Source of the DNA: Eutreptiella sp. 'Long Island Sound 2002'
Lineage: Eukaryota; Protista; Euglenida
Assembly (NCBI GenBank): GCA_964036045.1
Contig: OZ038378.1
Coordinates: 162,254,001-162,318,000, forward strand
DNA length: 64,000 nucleotides
Reading direction: 5' to 3'
In this document: positions 26,873 to 27,052 of the stretch, piece by piece
Layout: each line of letters begins with the position of its first letter
Numbering within the stretch: position 1 is the stretch's first letter
Translations under genes and position numbers: made by a program
Notes under the pieces: model-generated
The model's database searches: none
What the model was told of the DNA's origin: nothing
What the model saw: only the letters and a program-made list of their open reading frames with translations

Positions 26873-27052
26873 ATGCCTCAATCACGTGAAGATTATTTGC
26901 GTGCGTACCACGTACCTGAGTTGATCGACAAGGCCGTCGAGAGGTTGATTGACATAAAGCCCTCTAATGTCATTGAATTTTTGATGGAGCACTTCAAGTC
27001 TACTTCTCATGTACCATTGCATTGTGTTCACACGTGGTGCGCTTTGCGAGAG
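26873..27052 (+). CDS. GPI: GPI exon 1 (D/D-like domain plus first PGI helix [12 protein letters not shown])
   Basis: Acceptor TTCTTTGTAG 9 nt before the ATG; donor GAG|GTGTGT, phase 0, joins HWCSE. Confidence 0.85.

Follow-up and report, generated by a model that had tools for sequence, protein, structure and literature searches.

The DNA analyzed here is a stretch of 64,000 nucleotides (the window) from Eutreptiella sp. 'Long Island Sound 2002' (contig OZ038378.1, positions 162,254,001 to 162,318,000). An intact gene for the glycolytic enzyme GPI was found on its forward strand at positions 26873-49104. The gene consists of 14 exons and encodes a product of 603 aa. The coding sequence is 1,812 nt long with a TGA stop codon at 49102-49104, and the reading frame is uninterrupted after splicing. 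Euglenids have non-conventional introns besides conventional ones; in the GPI gene all 13 introns, which range from 110 to 3,740 nt, are of the GT-AG type. The donor GT of exon 1 lies at 27053, and the acceptor AG directly precedes position 27900.

The GPI-coding pieces were chained over 30.1-49.1 kb in a tblastn search with E. coli Pgi against the window. For each gap, splice sites were set at the GT-AG pair that kept the frame and gave the best fit to E. coli Pgi. RNA covers exons 1-3 and the start of exon 4, while the ten junctions of exons 4-14 are modeled. The features of the gene are listed in Table 1.

Table 1. Positions in the window of the GPI gene, its leader site and the parts of exon 1.
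Feature	Position (strand)	Description	Basis
Spliced-leader acceptor AG	26862-26863 (+)	Pyrimidine-rich run before it	Contig starts in four RNA runs
5' untranslated region	26864-26872 (+)	About 9 nt, from leader to ATG	Sequence and contig start
Exon 1	26873-27052 (+)	60 codons, phase 0 at its end	Open reading frame; RNA joint 27052/27900
D/D-like module (exon 1)	26885-27004 (+)	Residues 5-44: short helix 5-11, helix I 14-28, Pro30 loop, helix II 33-44	AF2 secondary structure, Pfam RIIa, AK8 alignment, fold matches to solved D/D domains
Linker (exon 1)	27005-27031 (+)	Residues 45-53, rich in Ser, Thr, His and Pro; pLDDT below 50 at 46-48	No counterpart in E. coli Pgi
Start of first PGI helix (exon 1)	27032-27052 (+)	T54-E60; runs on into exon 2	Aligns with E. 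coli Pgi from about residue 11
Exon 2	27900-27961 (+)	62 nt, ends in phase 2	Joints 27052/27900 and 27961/30089 in four RNA runs
Exon 3	30089-30266 (+)	Pfam PGI positions 1-41	RNA contigs, Pfam PGI, tblastn with E. coli Pgi
Exon 4	33205-33388 (+)	Pfam PGI positions 42-102	Loose contig end GACGATCCGTGCTGCAC encodes its GRSVLH start
Exons 5-7	34143-34204, 34667-34786, 35383-35505 (+)	Junctions inferred	Fit to E. coli Pgi, Pfam PGI
Exons 8-10	37517-37655, 38734-38815, 38926-39010 (+)	Junctions inferred	Fit to E. coli Pgi, Pfam PGI
Exons 11-14	42315-42443, 46184-46390, 48544-48697, 48998-49104 (+)	Modeled; the TGA stop ends exon 14	

The enzyme part of the product closely resembles known GPIs. Residues 55-600 are 62.7% identical to residues 12-544 of E. 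coli Pgi over 533 aligned positions, and all six PGI signature motifs are present, YEHK among them. Nine exon peptides match the Pfam family PGI (PF00342) with E-values from 3e-7 to 3e-25, all with more than 22 bits and thereby above the curated cut-off, and, taken in their order along the DNA, the exons account for profile positions 1-457 of 486. From its sequence the encoded GPI is predicted to be catalytically intact.

Intron 3 was found to contain inverted repeat arms at 30545-31004 and 32084-32625. The arms amount to about 0.5 kb in total, are 79-100% complementary and lie 1.1-1.9 kb apart; they probably represent a foldback element or a repeat present in two inverted copies. Upstream of the gene, a simple repeat of the (GA)n type, seen as RERERE in an ORF translation, occupies 26380-26440, some 0.45 kb ahead of the leader acceptor. 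Further out, about 4 kb ahead of the leader site, an exon-like ORF on the reverse strand at 22013-22801 codes for the first part of a kinesin motor domain (Pfam Kinesin, E 3e-23) and is oriented away from the GPI gene.

Transcripts and start codon

Sequencing runs were searched with a 9.9-kb stretch. RNA runs were found to hold about 7-9% of its words, which equals the exon share, and DNA runs to hold 85-97%. One DNA run, labeled as a third organism, held 35% of the words, so that it comes either from a close relative or from a sample with thin coverage.

Four RNA runs from three studies were aligned to window positions 26400-30600. Each gave a single contig of 2.7-2.8 kb with zero mismatches, and all four contigs carry the joints 27052/27900 and 27961/30089 (GT..AG). 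The first of these is the exon 1-2 junction that the initial annotation had predicted, and which is hereby found in transcripts. After position 30267 the contigs continue into a loose end that begins with GACGATCCGTGCTGCAC and corresponds to the start of exon 4 (GRSVLH...).

At the other end the contigs begin at 26863/4, preceded by 8-10 loose letters, ATTTTTTTTC. Two 10-mers serve to recognize the Euglena spliced leader at the 5' ends of transcripts, and this sequence, the 3' end of the leader, is one of them (PMC6630311). An in-frame TAG at 26861-26863 rules out any start further upstream and, since the leader is joined 9-10 nt before the ATG, Met1 is the first AUG of the mature mRNA. The fusion described below is real and expressed, and it begins at this first AUG.

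Sequence and predicted fold of the N-terminal extension

Exon 1 is one open frame from the ATG, which runs from REDYLRAY... through ...IEFLMEHF and KSTSHVP to the end of the linker and on to T-W-C-A-L-R-E. Residues 1-44 are extra relative to E. coli Pgi. They make up an acidic and helix-prone extension of about 44 residues, which counts 8 acidic and 6 basic residues and lacks a hydrophobic leader. The first helix of E. coli Pgi is matched in register by the tail of exon 1 together with exon 2, with W55 of the model falling at W11-Q12 (the two alignments are one residue apart). A single frame of exon 1 therefore contains the additional module as well as the true beginning of the enzyme. The initial annotation had stated that the extension continues in frame and without an intron into the first PGI helix and is then spliced in phase, and the ORF, the alignment and the RNA joints all agree with this. 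Its layout of exon 1 was correct with respect to frame and fusion, but it passed over the seven residues KSTSHVP ahead of the helix.

The same annotation took the extension for a dimerization-docking (D/D) domain of the RIIa/Dpy-30 type and proposed a profile search with residues 1-45. Among the 24,736 families of Pfam, RIIa (PF02197) was found to be the top family for exon 1 (E 0.012-0.021), and it also ranked first for residues 1-45 or 5-42 alone. The match remained below the curated threshold, however, with 14.9-15.7 bits relative to a cut-off of 22.4, and it places residues 29-42 on profile positions 18-31, which comprise helix II only. Neither Dpy-30 (PF05186) nor DUF5586 (PF17824) matched exon 1 in the Pfam scan. 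In a language-model search of the ESM Atlas the nearest clusters were RIIa, Dpy-30 and DUF5586, both for the whole of exon 1 and for residues 1-45; the scores of 0.78-0.83 are to be read as a lead only.

The closest relative was found among solved structures. In a phmmer search against all PDB sequences, residues 3-48 aligned with residues 31-77 of AK8 (9fqr) with a database-wide E-value of 0.56, and the N-terminal D/D domain of AK8 was the best meaningful match of the extension to a solved structure (31% identity). The Smith-Waterman score of the extension against the AK8 D/D domain was 64, compared to 22.3 ± 4.6 for shuffled sequences (z = 9), and was not reached in any of 20,000 shuffles. 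MAFFT aligned the full 48 residues at 31% identity, with one gap of one residue that follows residue 41; 11 columns are invariant, including Pro30, which opens helix II. Alignment with hhalign gave a P-value of 0.0027. BLASTP of exon 1 against the AK8 fragment returned no alignment, while Smith-Waterman, MAFFT, phmmer and hhalign all align the pair.

We rescanned the AK8 fragment (from deer) against Pfam. It matched DUF5586 at positions 6-45 of 404 with 24.6 bits relative to a cut-off of 26.6, and it gave a weak match to Tex55 and none to RIIa. The presence of DUF5586 in AK8 explains the DUF5586 rows of the ESM Atlas search. Furthermore, as the proven D/D domain of AK8 falls below every Pfam cut-off itself, the threshold is not decisive within the RIIa clan. 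It seems that the start of DUF5586 is a D/D module and that the Pfam cut-offs miss the AK8 branch of the clan.

The extension was also compared at the level of predicted structure. A single-sequence AF2 model of exon 1 had a pLDDT of 63 and helices at residues 5-11, 15-25, 30-40 and 47-59. Searches with this model by Foldseek against the PDB, by shape in the atlas and by a wide VIA-align comparison returned generic helical matches and no D/D domain. Residues 1-48 were then folded from a three-row alignment made up of the GPI extension and two AK8 fragments, which gave a pLDDT of 75 and helices at 5-11, 14-28 and 33-44; because AK8 rows are in the folding alignment, this model is independent of the kinship with AK8 only in part. 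With the second model, D/D domains accounted for about 47 of the best 50 PDB chains in Foldseek. These include PKA RIα, RIβ and RIIα, DPY-30, and D/D proteins of the radial spoke and the central pair. The match to PKA RIα had TM-scores of 0.77/0.79, an rmsd of 0.9 Å and a probability of 0.99; all Foldseek E-values were 0.3 or more, since the domain is tiny. VIA-align gave Z-scores of 6.8 for RIα (48/49 residues, rmsd 2.1), 6.1 for DPY-30 and 5.4 for RIIα. A helix-loop-helix of about 40 residues thus superposes on solved D/D protomers in the model that was built with AK8 rows. The extra short N-terminal helix of the predicted extension is likewise found in PKA RIα and DPY-30. The predicted fold superposes on PKA RIα/RIIα and DPY-30 over the whole domain, but the extension falls short of their sequence profiles.

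Taken individually these lines of evidence are modest, and no single sequence test reached a curated threshold, but all of them point in the same direction. By the sequence comparisons the N-terminal pattern of exon 1 appears to exceed chance, and the extension is very probably a D/D-fold member of the RIIa clan. The initial assignment to this superfamily is hence most likely right. It needs revision with regard to the type, as RIIa was found below threshold and Dpy-30 not at all, and the nearest relative would be the AK8-type N-terminal D/D domain (the DUF5586 region), ahead of PKA-RII or Dpy-30.

Other GPIs and other tagged enzymes

We searched for further GPIs with a similar extension. A representative library of 1.84 billion proteins, queried with exon 1, gave a bacterial repeat protein as the sole match; it is without any relevant Pfam family, and we take it to be a chance match. 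A word-index search with exon 1 returned no candidate, and a JGI metagenome scan with exon 1 found nothing. When part of exon 3 was used in the JGI metagenome scan, 80 GPI loci could be fetched. None of these was a close relative of the euglenid gene and none carried a D/D-like extension, about 30-40 residues before the motif RF.KFS being the norm. In papers that combine RIIa or Dpy-30 with GPI, with glycolysis or with flagella, D/D-tagged enolase and adenylate kinases were found and no GPI, which agrees with the earlier statement that a GPI fused to a D/D domain had not been described. While D/D-tagged enolase, AK8 and AK7 are already known, a D/D-tagged GPI would be new.

D/D domains are the standard means by which the axoneme retains PKA, nucleoside diphosphate kinase and adenylate kinases, and enolase is, to our knowledge, the sole glycolytic enzyme on record with such a domain. 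In the axoneme of bovine sperm the N-terminal D/D domain of AK8 has EFCAB10 as its pairing partner and sits against RSPH3 of the radial spoke (PMC11779644). Biochemical work has confirmed that anchoring is mediated by the two N-terminal D/D domains (PMC12541429), and AK8 is listed in the PKA-R-like D/D superfamily (Dahlin et al., 2021, PMC8339350). The D/D domain of AK8, which belongs to the R1D2 group, likewise sits at the N-terminus of a metabolic enzyme and comprises about 45 residues, and it shares the helix spacing and the proline of helix II with the GPI extension. The two differ in their cargo, which is a nucleotide kinase in AK8 and GPI here. They also differ in the loop, as the sequence KPSNV of the GPI extension has one proline followed by a hydrophobic residue, which is the R2D2 signature by the rule of Dahlin et al., whereas AK8 has two prolines.

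A D/D domain on enolase exists outside animals and was lost in metazoans (Dahlin et al., 2021, PMC8339350). This does not agree with the initial annotation on one point, namely that the sperm enolase ENO4 would carry a similar module. By description, the tagged enolases (e.g., that of Micromonas commoda) resemble the GPI studied here in being glycolytic enzymes with a PKA-R-like D/D domain; enolase acts in lower glycolysis, however, and GPI in upper glycolysis. A further parallel comes from T. brucei, of the sister lineage, where adenylate kinases reach the paraflagellar rod by means of an N-terminal extension of 55 aa (PMC2813431). The extension of these enzymes, ADKA and ADKB, is said to be homologous to the N-termini of human and worm adenylate kinases (PMC2813431). 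Again by description, ADKA and ADKB are metabolic enzymes with an N-terminal extension of similar length, which is needed for their location in the rod.

Proposed function and alternative readings

We consider it reasonably probable, by analogy with the tagged kinases, that the AK8-like module of the RIIa clan docks GPI on a scaffold, the likeliest place being the flagellum. GPI is an obligate homodimer and each enzyme therefore bears two modules. As in AK8, AK7 and PKA, the tags, carried on flexible linkers, would pair with each other or with the D/D domain of a partner to form a four-helix bundle. The groove of this bundle would then clamp an amphipathic helix of a scaffold protein, and the interconversion of G6P and F6P would thereby be fixed at a defined site. 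That the tag dimerizes, that it binds an amphipathic helix and where the enzyme is located are all inferred here from the known systems. The tether to the flagellum or cytoskeleton and the anchored glycolytic module proposed in the initial annotation are putative in the same way. On these grounds GPI, an enzyme of early glycolysis, is probably tethered and not free-floating, perhaps in the flagellum.

The flagellum (axoneme or paraflagellar rod) would be the likeliest site because the same device holds adenylate kinases there. [quoted passage not shown] A GPI alone in the flagellum would make little sense unless neighboring enzymes sit there too.

Import into an organelle is unlikely, given an acidic extension without a hydrophobic leader and a C-terminus without a peroxisomal signal. 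A plastid or mitochondrial presequence was ruled out by the composition of the extension, and a peroxisomal signal of the SKL type by the C-terminus, which is NTK. The plastid proteome of E. gracilis is without GPI, and a review of Euglena metabolism gives the location of phosphoglucoisomerase as unreported and notes no strong targeting signal.

The enzymes of kinetoplastids suggest another function for the extension. Trypanosomatid PGIs bear an N-terminal extension of 53 residues with undefined function (bioRxiv 10.64898/2026.01.15.699324); in the chains 2o2c_A, 1t10_A and 4qfh_A about 50 extra residues are evident from PDB chain lengths and offsets. This is the same enzyme in the same phylum, with an extension nearly equal in length to the one found here. 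Moreover, the N-domain of L. donovani G6PDH (7zhu_B 5-55) matched the pLDDT 75 model at a Z-score of 6.1 over 47 residues, which equals the match to true D/D domains, and on the strength of the model it may be an unrecognized D/D relative. This L. donovani domain has been called unique to the G6PDHs of kinetoplastids; it forms the dimer-dimer interface and rotates on substrate binding (PMC9734377). Kinetoplastid G6PDH has the substrate G6P in common with GPI and a matching two-helix fold, but its N-domain is described as a tetramerization element and not as a docking device.

From the match to this domain and its role at an interface, it follows that the tag could be an oligomerization or regulatory element. 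The helical N-domain would in that case assemble GPI dimers into tetramers or higher forms and tune their activity, and not act as an anchor. We regard this as unlikely. The extension has sequence kinship with AK8, which is a proven docking domain, whereas it has no detectable sequence similarity to the N-termini of kinetoplastid G6PDH or PGI (phmmer of exon 1 against the full-length PGI chains 2o2c, 1t10 and 4qfh found none). Furthermore, for D/D domains self-association and docking are not mutually exclusive.

If the tag does serve to dock the enzyme, D/D tagging would be extended to the first reversible step of glycolysis. This leads to the testable idea of a protist that assembles much of glycolysis on a scaffold by means of one shared docking module. 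In a broader version, euglenids would have several D/D-tagged glycolytic enzymes on one amphipathic-helix scaffold of the flagellum or the rod, and the extension of trypanosomatid PGI and the N-domain of kinetoplastid G6PDH would be diverged remnants of an ancestral euglenozoan tagging, left after glycolysis moved into glycosomes. We hold this broader version to be rather improbable, and put it forward as a working hypothesis for the N-terminal extensions of trypanosomatid PGI and G6PDH.

The likeness to D/D domains could also be convergent or due to chance, in which case the extension would be a helical leader specific to the lineage, with some other role (stability or other targeting) or none. 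This would fit with all sequence scores being below threshold, with the single chance match in the representative library and with finding no homologue of the module on other GPIs. Against it, four different methods independently converge on one small superfamily among thousands, the hypothesis had been stated beforehand and reaches significance both in the shuffle test and with hhalign, and the bona fide D/D domain of AK8 fails the Pfam cut-offs as well. We therefore find a chance resemblance very unlikely.

It is equally improbable that the tagged form is a minor pool and that most of the GPI is an ordinary cytosolic enzyme started at the in-frame Met38 by leaky scanning or an alternative leader site, which would leave about 17 residues before the first PGI helix compared to about 10 in E. 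coli Pgi: contigs cannot reveal rare second 5' ends or use of Met38, but the leader lies 9-10 nt before Met1 in four of four contigs, Met1 has an A at position -3, and the sequence just before Met38 is without an AG and pyrimidine tract.

Among the runs with words of the GPI stretch are four estuary metatranscriptomes. The two of them that belong to the aligned RNA runs carry the identical spliced and leader-capped mRNA, which is compatible with a marine or brackish form.
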